DNA of 64,000 nucleotides, from assembly GCF_041956535.1 (NCBI RefSeq), contig NW_027192193.1, positions 450,235 through 514,234 of the forward strand, written 5' to 3'. This stretch comes from Calcarisporiella thermophila CBS 279.70. Lineage: Eukaryota > Fungi > Calcarisporiellomycota. Position numbers and translations under genes: made by a program. The notes under the pieces were generated by a model that saw only the letters and a program-made list of their open reading frames with translations, made no database searches and had not been told where the DNA came from. Positions 43,390-45,203 of this stretch are shown in pieces; position 1 is the stretch's first letter, and each line of letters begins with the position of its first letter.

Positions 43390-44211
43390 ATGTCGTCTCT
43401 AGTTGGCAAAACTATACCTCCGATTAGTGGCCTTATTCCTTTGCGCCAAGGTCAGCATGAATTGGTCAGTATTGGTTCTCCTGTAAATCCTGGCCAAACG
43501 AAGGTGACCGTAGTGGAATTCTGGGCAACCTGGTAATATGTTGACCGAAAAGTCTGTCACCGAAGGATATTCATATTCTATTGTTATGATTCTATGCAGG
43601 TGTCCTCCGTGTCGAGACAGGTGCTGAATCAGTACTGCCATTGGTTGTGTTAGTTACTGATTTGTCATACTTTGAATTTATTTTAGCATCCCTCACTTGA
43701 GTGAGCTACAGGAGCGCTATAAAGCAAAAGAGGTAGAAATAATTGGAATAACCTGGGAAAATGATGAAAATGTAAGGCGGCTTTTATTTTTTGACTTCTA
43801 CATGACATCTAACCGTGTATTACTCTTCAGAAACTGCGTCATTTCGTCAATTCAATGGAGGTGCCTATTACCTATACCGTTGTTATGGATCCAACCCAAA
43901 CCACCCGACAATCTATATATAGTCTTACTGGAGCACAGGGAATTCCCTTCGCCTTGATCCTCGTGAATAACGAAGTCAAATACCAAGGTCACCCGATGGA
44001 CTCGGCCTTTGCTACAGAGCTTGACAAATACACGTCAATGGCTTCTGTTAAGGAAGCAAAGCCGAAACCTATTCATGAAACATACGAACAGCTAATGCAA
44101 AGACACCCGGGCGAATTGCGAAAAATATTGGAGGAGAGGGGTATAAGTACAAAGGGATTACTGGAGAAGAAAGATTTCGCAAAAGAAATCCTTGATAAGT
44201 GTGGTCCCTAA
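43390..44211 (+). CDS. TlpA/redoxin-like thioredoxin (WCPPC) with C-terminal SAP-like helix pair, 4 exons
   Basis: VVEFWATW|CPPCRDS|IPHLSELQERY, GIPFA cis-Pro loop, YQGHPM; tail ELRKILEERGISTKGLLEKKDF. Confidence 0.88.
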
Positions 44212-44397
44212 TTACCGACCCAATCTGGAATTCCAGTTATCTTTCATTTATCAAAAGTTGTATGGACACTTTTATTGAATATCTAAACAAAGCTCACAAC
44301 TCTTCCAAAAGAGACCATCATCCAACAAATTAAGAGAATCCGTTGTTGTTAAATCCCTCAAGGATTTACAAGAGGAGGGGTTTGTCAGAGAATATTC

Positions 44398-44581
44398 CTA
44401 TCACGATAAAAAGATGGATCAGTACCATGTTGATGAATCCATTGTCAAGTCAATAAACAGATTGATATCAGACAATAATATAGTGATTCCGGAATGGTCA
44501 TTTCCTCATCAGCATCAGTAGAGGGAGACCATCAATCATCATATAAATGGGGACGTCATAGCAATCGAAAAGGATACTTAC
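44398..44581 (-). other. Predicted 3'-UTR intron of RPS12 hosting the snoRNA
   Basis: GTAAGT donor 23 nt after the stop codon; branch-like TACTGAT at 44424-44418; TAG acceptor ending at 44398; AATAAA near 44271-44276. Confidence 0.75.
44465..44545 (-). ncRNA. Box C/D snoRNA, SNORD100-like (predicted guide for the 18S site equivalent to human Gm436)
   Basis: Minus strand: C box ATGATGA (44542-44536), guide CTCCCTCTA, D' CTGA (44518-44515), C' TGATGA (44511-44506), D CTGA (44471-44468); guide is complementary to conserved 18S AGAGGGAG. Confidence 0.85.
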
Positions 44582-44604
44582 AATAAATATCTCGTGTTGA
44601 GGAC

Positions 44605-45045
44605 TTAGCGAGACTTGAAGTAGTCCAAGAGGACGTTCATGGCCTCACTCTCCTCACCGAAGTCCTTCACAACGCAGCAGGCGCATGCGACGACCTTGCG
44701 GGGGTTACCCTCACGATCGATCTTGCAGAGACCAACCCACTCACCGAGCTTCTTGGCATCAGAAACCTTGATCAGGTTAATGTTGTGCTCAGCGCAGAGG
44801 GCCTCAACGAGCTTGATGTACTCTTGCTCGTTGCAGGACTCAGCCAAGACGCAGAGGTGAGCCTGGCGGCGATCGAGGGCACGTGCGCACTCACGCAAAC
44901 CACGGGCAAGGCCGTCGTGGATGAGGGAGCGACGGAGAACTTCTTGGAGAGCATCCTCAACGGACATCTGACCTTTCACTGGGGCATCAGCAGCGACCTC
45001 AACCTCCTGAACTGGGGCGGGCACGTCATTTCCTTCAGTCGACAT
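44605..45045 (-). CDS. RPS12: 40S ribosomal protein S12 (eS12)
   Basis: [48 protein letters not shown]; strongly biased codon usage; CDS intronless. Confidence 0.98.
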
Positions 45046-45079: not shown

Positions 45080-45203
45080 CTATAGTAGAAGTCAAAAGTC
45101 GCAGATTAGGAATTAAGTCTCTGACATCCAAAGCGTGAACGATGTTTGAATGGATGGATGGATGGATGGATGGGTGGATGAACCCATGCAAATGTAAACT
45201 TAC
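45080..45203 (-). other. Predicted 5'-UTR intron of RPS12
   Basis: GTAAGT at 45203 and TATAG acceptor ending at 45080, 34 nt before the ATG; branch-like CTAAT near 45105-45109. Confidence 0.7.
45150..45180. repeat. (ATGG)n/(CCAT)n microsatellite
   Basis: About 7-8 ATGG units with one variant, seen directly. Confidence 0.9.

Follow-up and report, generated by a model that had tools for sequence, protein, structure and literature searches.

The closest described relatives of the RNA reported here come from animals and plants. In animals, the box C/D snoRNA SNORD100 (HBII-429; RF00609) is intronic in RPS12 from sponges to mammals and has been assigned to human 18S Gm436 (PMC3412847), the hosting intron in mouse being intron 4 (PMC10287158). 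In plants, modification of Arabidopsis 18S G392, which is guided by SnoR30, has been mapped by RiboMeth-seq (PMC8053127), and a published table equates human Gm436 with Arabidopsis Gm392 and holds no yeast counterpart (PMC3511168). The human host and target, as well as the lack of this methylation in Saccharomyces cerevisiae, had been stated in an earlier note on the DNA analysed here, and are borne out by these publications. Genes for plant snoRNAs are as a rule grouped in polycistronic clusters (PMC2780460), and no RPS12 host for snoR30 was reported in the literature searched. Among fungi, 45 of the 55 published C/D snoRNAs of Neurospora crassa are intronic, a guide for this 18S site is missing from that set (PMC2780460), and a survey of the fungal snoRNAome mentions neither SNORD100 nor snoR30 nor RPS12 (PMC5824354). 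In the literature searched, we came across no fungal orthologue of SNORD100/snoR30.

We analysed a 64,000 nt stretch of the Calcarisporiella thermophila CBS 279.70 genome (the window), in which a candidate for such an orthologue lies on the minus strand, directly downstream of RPS12 (Table 1). In our reading, which we hold with good confidence, the candidate is a functional member of the SNORD100/snoR30 family of box C/D snoRNAs, hosted by a spliceosomal intron whose 5′ end lies 23 nt past the stop codon of an otherwise intronless RPS12. A snoRNA host intron located after the stop codon is, to our knowledge, unusual. The complete C-D′-C′-D box set, the GT-AG frame, the offset from the stop codon and the uninterrupted coding sequence had all been described in the earlier note, and each was found on the minus strand where that note had placed it.

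Table 1. Features of RPS12, its candidate 3′-UTR intron and the snoRNA (positions are those of the window)
Feature	Position	Strand	Basis
eS12/RPS12 coding sequence, intronless, 146 aa; host gene	44605-45045	-	ORF
RPS12 stop codon, TAA	44607-44605	-	
3′-UTR stretch from stop codon to 5′ splice site, 23 nt	44582-44604	-	Sequence
Candidate spliceosomal intron of the RPS12 3′ UTR, 184 nt	44398-44581	-	Sequence
5′ site of candidate intron, GTAAGT	44581-44576	-	
Box C/D snoRNA, SNORD100/snoR30 family, ~85-88 nt	44461-44548	-	Rfam SNORD100, 35.2 bits, E 5e-6
Terminal stem	44548-44542 with 44467-44461	-	
C box, AUGAUGA	44536-44542	-	Sequence, alignment
Internal stem, 5′ arm AUGGUC, 3′ arm GACCAU	44527-44532; 44499-44494	-	6 bp, covariation
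D′ guide, CUCCCUCUA	44519-44527	-	Own 18S, duplex calculation
D′ box, CUGA	44515-44518	-	Sequence, SNORD100 consensus
C′ box, UGAUGA (44511-44506) overlapping family-conserved UGAGGAAA (44508-44501)	44501-44511	-	SNORD100 consensus
Accessory antisense element, UUCCGGAAUC	44485-44494	-	rRNA complementarity
D box, CUGA	44468-44471	-	Sequence
Branch-like motif, TACTGAT (CTRAY-type)	44424-44418	-	
3′ site of candidate intron, TAG	44400-44398	-	
Inferred second 3′-UTR exon, end coordinate approximate	44250-44397	-	AATAAA at 44276-44271

The identity of the host gene was established by comparison with protein families and structures. The ORF matched the Pfam L7Ae/S12e family (PF01248, 3e-27) and the eS12 chains of fungal, plant and animal structures in the PDB (down to 3e-57), and its closest database relatives, at 76–84 % identity, were the eS12 proteins of the early-diverging fungi Lobosporangium, Podila, Piptocephalis, Olpidium and Jimgerdemannia. 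No AATAAA occurs from the RPS12 stop up to the snoRNA, the first one appearing 3′ of the latter; because this sole poly(A) signal sits beyond it, the snoRNA probably falls inside the RPS12 transcription unit. A convergent thioredoxin-like gene (43855-44211, plus strand) stops at 44211, ~40–60 nt from the inferred RPS12 poly(A) site, and the mRNA 3′ ends of the two genes probably overlap or abut. On the opposite side of RPS12, we observed a candidate 5′-UTR intron of 124 nt (45080-45203, minus strand), with GTAAGT at 45203 and a TAG ending at 45080; it contains a short repeat of the CATC type, and is preceded by a pyrimidine-rich stretch that is a possible transcript start. If this intron is real, RPS12 would have introns in both UTRs and a coding sequence without any.

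The Rfam check proposed in the earlier note gave a divided answer. At the gathering score no match was found in the window, with SNORD100 reaching 35.2 bits against a threshold of 58 bits, and taken literally the refuting condition of that note, the lack of an Rfam SNORD100 hit, applies at this score. When the 301 nt surrounding the element were searched by E-value, SNORD100 (RF00609) came out as by far the best Rfam family (E 5e-6), and the next family had an E-value of 0.3. The score stays under the threshold because the 3′ half of the snoRNA departs from the animal consensus, and it is this same difference that led the global Rfam alignment to miss the true D box. Within the core, the guide, D′ and C′ sequences and the CCAU that follows are identical to the SNORD100 consensus; the resemblance cited in the earlier note is therefore real. 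Of the traits of the SNORD100/snoR30 clan (Rfam CL00073), the window RNA has the conserved internal D′ (CUGA) and C′ (UGAGGAAA) boxes with a stem that closes them, and towards its two ends a C box of the form RUGAUGA and a D box CUGA, together with a terminal stem. The guide sits directly 5′ of the D′ box without a gap, and the terminal stem comprises 7 bp with one mismatch, making it weak when judged by its longest perfect run. Our own family model (R1) scores the window snoRNA at 50 bits (44464-44542), and a search of the genome returned the self match only, such that the snoRNA is single copy. We filed the window RNA as a CL00073 clan orthologue by its target and core, and not as an RF00609 hit.

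With metazoan SNORD100 the window RNA shares the box C/D build, the guide-D′ core CUCCCUCUACUGA, the C′ sequence, a stem flanking the guide, the predicted 18S target (human Gm436) and, apparently, the RPS12 host. It differs in having one extra U between the GG and the guide core, in its accessory element (see below) and in its location, which is a candidate 3′-UTR intron of a gene with an intronless coding sequence as opposed to a coding-sequence intron. The likeness to plant snoR30 is one of clan and of predicted modification site (Arabidopsis 18S Gm392).

In order to define the target, the genome's own 18S (L001, on another contig than the window) was located by pattern search; it reads GAUUCCGGAGAGGGAGCC. 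The target named in the earlier note is present in it, and the guide forms eight Watson–Crick pairs, not nine, with 18S AGAGGGAG (duplex −18.3 kcal/mol). The register was likewise as claimed, with the fifth nucleotide from D′ (C44523) pairing with 18S G390 (numbered from the UACCUGG start). This predicted methylation site is the equivalent of human Gm436 and Arabidopsis Gm392. Past the eight pairs there is either a U:C mismatch or a one-nucleotide bulge, followed by two more pairs, and at guide position 1, next to D′, an A stands opposite a G. Eight contiguous pairs lie at the short end of the range for C/D guides. A second antisense element may compensate for this: the accessory element is complementary to 18S GAUUCCGGA(A), which lies directly 5′ of the guide duplex (−16.9 kcal/mol), and its duplex overlaps that of the guide by one or two nucleotides, so that the two together span ~18 consecutive rRNA nucleotides. 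Moreover, CCGGAAUC is invariant in all five fungal copies of the snoRNA that we identified (see below).

Extra snoRNA–rRNA pairing beside the guide duplex has been described for many C/D snoRNAs, HBII-429 among them (van Nues et al., 2011; PMC3116282), and the window RNA shows the same arrangement, with a conserved second antisense element adjoining the predicted methylation duplex. Compared with its animal orthologue HBII-429, however, both the accessory element and its rRNA partner differ. Whereas the fungal UCCGGAAUC pairs next to the target, the animal consensus has GUUACCC, which is complementary to GGGUAAC, ~25 nt further upstream in 18S; in this element the fungal copies are closer to protist-type copies from metagenomes than to animal ones. 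The possibility of a second guide upstream of box D was also considered and rejected: the D-proximal stretch matches just seven AU-rich nucleotides at 18S ~position 415, and is conserved in Jimgerdemannia only, as judged by eye. We read it as spacer.

A survey of RPS12 loci across early-diverging fungi had also been suggested in the earlier note, and we examined the RPS12 loci of thirteen other fungi together with 3 kb flanks. The same snoRNA is present at five fungal RPS12 loci, window included, the other four being those of Basidiobolus meristosporus (L026), Jimgerdemannia flammicorona (L027), Polychytrium aggregatum (L028) and Cladochytrium replicatum (L031). In Basidiobolus it occupies a 3′-UTR intron behind an intronless coding sequence, with GTAAGT 22 nt past the stop, a canonical CTAAC 13 nt before the TAG, and AATAAA following the 3′ site. 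The Jimgerdemannia copy lies in a candidate 3′-UTR intron with a weak 5′ site, GTAAAC, 32 nt past the stop, a later TAG and AATAAA downstream. In Polychytrium the snoRNA is found in the last coding-sequence intron, after the VVK codons, and in Cladochytrium it is intergenic, 2.4 kb upstream of RPS12 and on the other strand. The Basidiobolus and Jimgerdemannia copies are weak Rfam SNORD100 matches in their own right. At the loci of Lobosporangium, Podila, Piptocephalis, Conidiobolus, Rhizophagus, Rhizopus, Rozella and Sorochytrium (eight of the thirteen), no copy was found within 3 kb of RPS12 by relaxed motif scans, Rfam or the family profile R1. A motif scan with the window's exact A before D′ returned none of the orthologues, which the relaxed pattern did recover. 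Most of the sampled fungi have lost the snoRNA from RPS12 or moved it elsewhere.

The five fungal copies were compared with seven non-redundant copies from metagenome contigs. Little or no variation is seen across this set in the guide, D′, C′, CCGRAAUC and D, whilst the spacers vary. The internal stem, formed by pairing of the bases immediately 5′ of the guide with the bases immediately 3′ of C′, is maintained by covariation of its arms: GGUC/GACC in the window, Basidiobolus and Jimgerdemannia; GCGG/CCGC in Polychytrium; GGUGC/GCACC in Cladochytrium; UUAGCU/AGCUAA in one metagenome copy (L022); and AGCU/AGCU in several others. The extra U in the fungal guide is explained by this stem. We also considered whether the window might hold a decaying or inactive copy that no longer guides methylation, as could be argued from the short guide with its mismatch next to D′, the weak terminal stem and the sub-threshold Rfam score. 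This we regard as highly improbable, as all four boxes are canonical, the guide, C′ box and accessory element are (nearly) invariant across fungal phyla where the spacers diverge, the internal stem has undergone compensatory changes, and there is no other copy in the genome. An environmental metagenome contig (Ga0065711_1060270; L024) bears vertebrate-type eS12 exons with SNORD100-like copies, and is the sole metagenome match with RPS12 beside the snoRNA; it is likely animal DNA, possibly human. Although it was included in alignment A1 and model R1, no conclusion rests on it.

The layout expected for release by splicing is present in the window, with a canonical 5′ site, a branch motif, a 3′ site and the snoRNA ~50 nt upstream of the branch point. 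From the end of the D box there are 70 nt to the 3′ splice site and 49 nt to the branch A, in agreement with the spacings of 70 and about 50 nt given in the earlier note. The branch motif is CTGAT, as compared with CTAAC in a neighbouring intron. The intronic snoRNAs of N. crassa are similarly one per intron and similarly spaced (PMC2780460), and the window snoRNA, like these, leaves ~40 nt of intron on its 5′ side and some tens of nucleotides on its 3′ side. In a three-way alignment of the 3′ regions of the window, Basidiobolus and Jimgerdemannia, conservation is confined to the end of the coding sequence, the 5′ splice site and the snoRNA; the stretch between stop codon and 5′ splice site is short in each (23, 22 and 32 nt, respectively), and its sequence is not conserved. 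The 5′ site GTAAGTAT aligns between the window and Basidiobolus within flanks that have diverged, and in all three cases AATAAA is found only beyond the 3′ splice site. As the 5′ splice site is conserved, and at a conserved short distance from the stop codon, we infer that the window snoRNA, lying in a GT...AG frame between the RPS12 stop and the first AATAAA, is released from an intron by splicing.

An alternative is that the snoRNA is real but is cut from the unspliced 3′ UTR or a read-through transcript, or is made from a promoter of its own, the GT...AG frame being incidental. Non-intronic precursors are the source of some snoRNAs in fungi and plants, and the Cladochytrium copy is intergenic, with TATAAAA upstream and no clear splice sites. 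Furthermore, GTAAGT is not enriched in the window (20 occurrences in 128 kb, both strands counted) and is therefore not this genome's only 5′ site. Such a route is nevertheless unlikely in our judgement. The chance of a GTAAGT falling in the 62-nt gap that separates the stop from the C box is ~1 %, GTAAGTAT recurs at 22 and 23 nt past the stop in two fungi whose UTR flanks have otherwise diverged, and Basidiobolus adds a canonical CTAAC 13 nt before its TAG. In addition, the poly(A) signals are positioned after the 3′ splice sites, the 62 nt past the stop leave no promoter-like room, and excision of the snoRNA without splicing of the UTR would sacrifice an mRNA that encodes an abundant ribosomal protein. 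Taking together these odds for GTAAGT, the rank of SNORD100 as best Rfam family and the recurrence of the RNA at four other fungal RPS12 loci, we consider the arrangement to be beyond chance.

A different reading of the 5′ site was also tried. A U12-type 5′ site motif, GTATCCTTT, is present at 44569-44577 (minus strand), and the 5′ site can be read as U12-type GTATCCTT, 4 nt inside GTAAGT; no U12 branch consensus was seen near the 3′ end, and Basidiobolus and Jimgerdemannia both lack the motif, such that we rejected this as the main reading. The genome's full-length U12 snRNA candidate (L033, G000:C1:926673-926772) is sub-threshold in Rfam (44.4 against 53 bits).

Under the splicing-dependent reading that we favour, the RPS12 pre-mRNA would be transcribed through the snoRNA to the poly(A) signal ~120 nt past the 3′ splice site, and splicing would free the snoRNA-bearing intron. 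The snoRNP proteins would assemble on the C/D and C′/D′ motifs, and once the intron is debranched, exonucleases would shorten it to an RNA of ~85 nt. The D′ guide could then pair with 18S AGAGGGAG and the accessory UCCGGAAUC with the rRNA directly adjoining the guide duplex, allowing fibrillarin to 2′-O-methylate 18S G390. A single transcript would in this manner give rise to both the eS12 mRNA and the snoRNA. The placement of an intron in the 3′ UTR raises the matter of nonsense-mediated decay (NMD), as an exon junction located beyond roughly 50 nt downstream of the stop marks an animal mRNA for decay. The three stop-to-junction distances are all below this limit, and for that reason the spliced RPS12 mRNA may plausibly escape NMD; the short distance should spare it. 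In Neurospora, introns in 3′ UTRs are reported to elicit decay (Zhang and Sachs 2015, as cited in PMC8476143). An intron lying 22–32 nt past the stop, and kept only for its snoRNA, would offer a natural case in which to study how 3′-UTR introns escape surveillance in fungi.

With respect to the age of the association between snoRNA and host, the earlier note had proposed a pairing kept since the fungal–animal ancestor. Its antiquity is supported by the four other fungal RPS12 loci, whilst descent from that ancestor is only the more parsimonious account. The fungal linkage spans Chytridiomycota, Zoopagomycota and Mucoromycota, and was therefore present near the root of the fungi; as linkage in animals extends from sponges to mammals, a single ancestral linkage is more parsimonious than two. 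On this basis we lean, with modest confidence, towards common ancestry of the SNORD100–RPS12 pairing in fungi and animals. We favour, by a slight degree, the further proposition that this ancestral linkage survived intron loss by moving among mid-coding-sequence, last coding-sequence and 3′-UTR introns.

The competing account is one of convergence, in which the snoRNA and its 3′-UTR intron are real, but a mobile snoRNA settled in RPS12 twice, once in fungi and once in animals. Several observations are compatible with this. The hosting intron differs, being mid-coding-sequence in mouse (intron 4, PMC10287158), the last coding-sequence intron in Polychytrium and a 3′-UTR intron in three fungi, and the accessory element differs likewise (GUUACCC in animals, UCCGGAAUC in fungi). 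Eight fungal RPS12 loci are without the snoRNA, and for ten confirmed C/D snoRNA copies from non-vertebrate metagenome contigs, the contig in question carries no RPS12. Intronic snoRNA locations have, moreover, been argued to drift, with ribosomal protein genes as favoured landing sites (PMC3511168). Mobile snoRNAs would settle repeatedly in these highly expressed genes, and as a genome has dozens of snoRNAs and roughly 80 genes for ribosomal proteins, a single chance coincidence in each genome is not unlikely. Against it, the fungal linkage already existed near the root of that kingdom, the animal linkage reaches sponges (PMC3412847), and two independent captures by RPS12, out of ~80 such genes and each time at the root of a kingdom, are less parsimonious than one. 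The Cladochytrium snoRNA, found 2.4 kb from RPS12, would be expected there by chance only about once in 10^4; its proximity to the gene, whilst lying outside it, implies that linkage persists through rearrangement. Convergence is thus a tenable account, albeit one to which we give somewhat less than even weight.

Should common ancestry be correct, no older association between a snoRNA and a protein-coding host gene would be on record; the pairing would stand as a counter-example to the free drift of snoRNA locations, and would hint at a functional tie between eS12 expression and methylation of 18S at the G390 site. Comparative work has concluded that the positions of intronic snoRNAs are unstable over deep time, and the RPS12 case provides a test of constraint on host choice. 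The SNORD100/snoR30 guide and its 18S site were known from animals and plants, and the five early-diverging fungi fill the fungal gap; presence of the guide in these organisms dates its loss to later fungal lineages. No new mechanism is involved, as a known family and a known arrangement are here extended to a new kingdom.

A number of additional observations were made at the individual loci of other fungi. In Jimgerdemannia, the deposited RPS12 model of 212 aa (L027, 124-1127) ends exactly at the D-box TGA of the snoRNA; it seems to have missed the true stop (965-967) and run on into the snoRNA, and is probably an annotation error. In the host intron of Polychytrium, the snoRNA is followed immediately by a long repeat of the hexamer CAGTAG (L028, 3780-3875). 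The Cladochytrium snoRNA (L031, 545-637, minus strand) lies ~150 nt upstream of the start codon of a peptidase M13 gene, downstream of a pantoate hydroxymethyltransferase gene and ~190 nt downstream of its TATAAAA, and may be independently transcribed. Finally, in Lobosporangium transversale, where RPS12 is without the SNORD100-like RNA, a different box C/D snoRNA is present at ~2727-2819 of the locus (L002), with AUGAUGA ... CUGA boxes and a terminal stem of 8–9 bp, the same sequence being found in a second assembly (L003); it sits in an apparent 5′-UTR intron (2581-2969 of L002, plus strand) with GTAAGT at 2581 and AG at ~2969.
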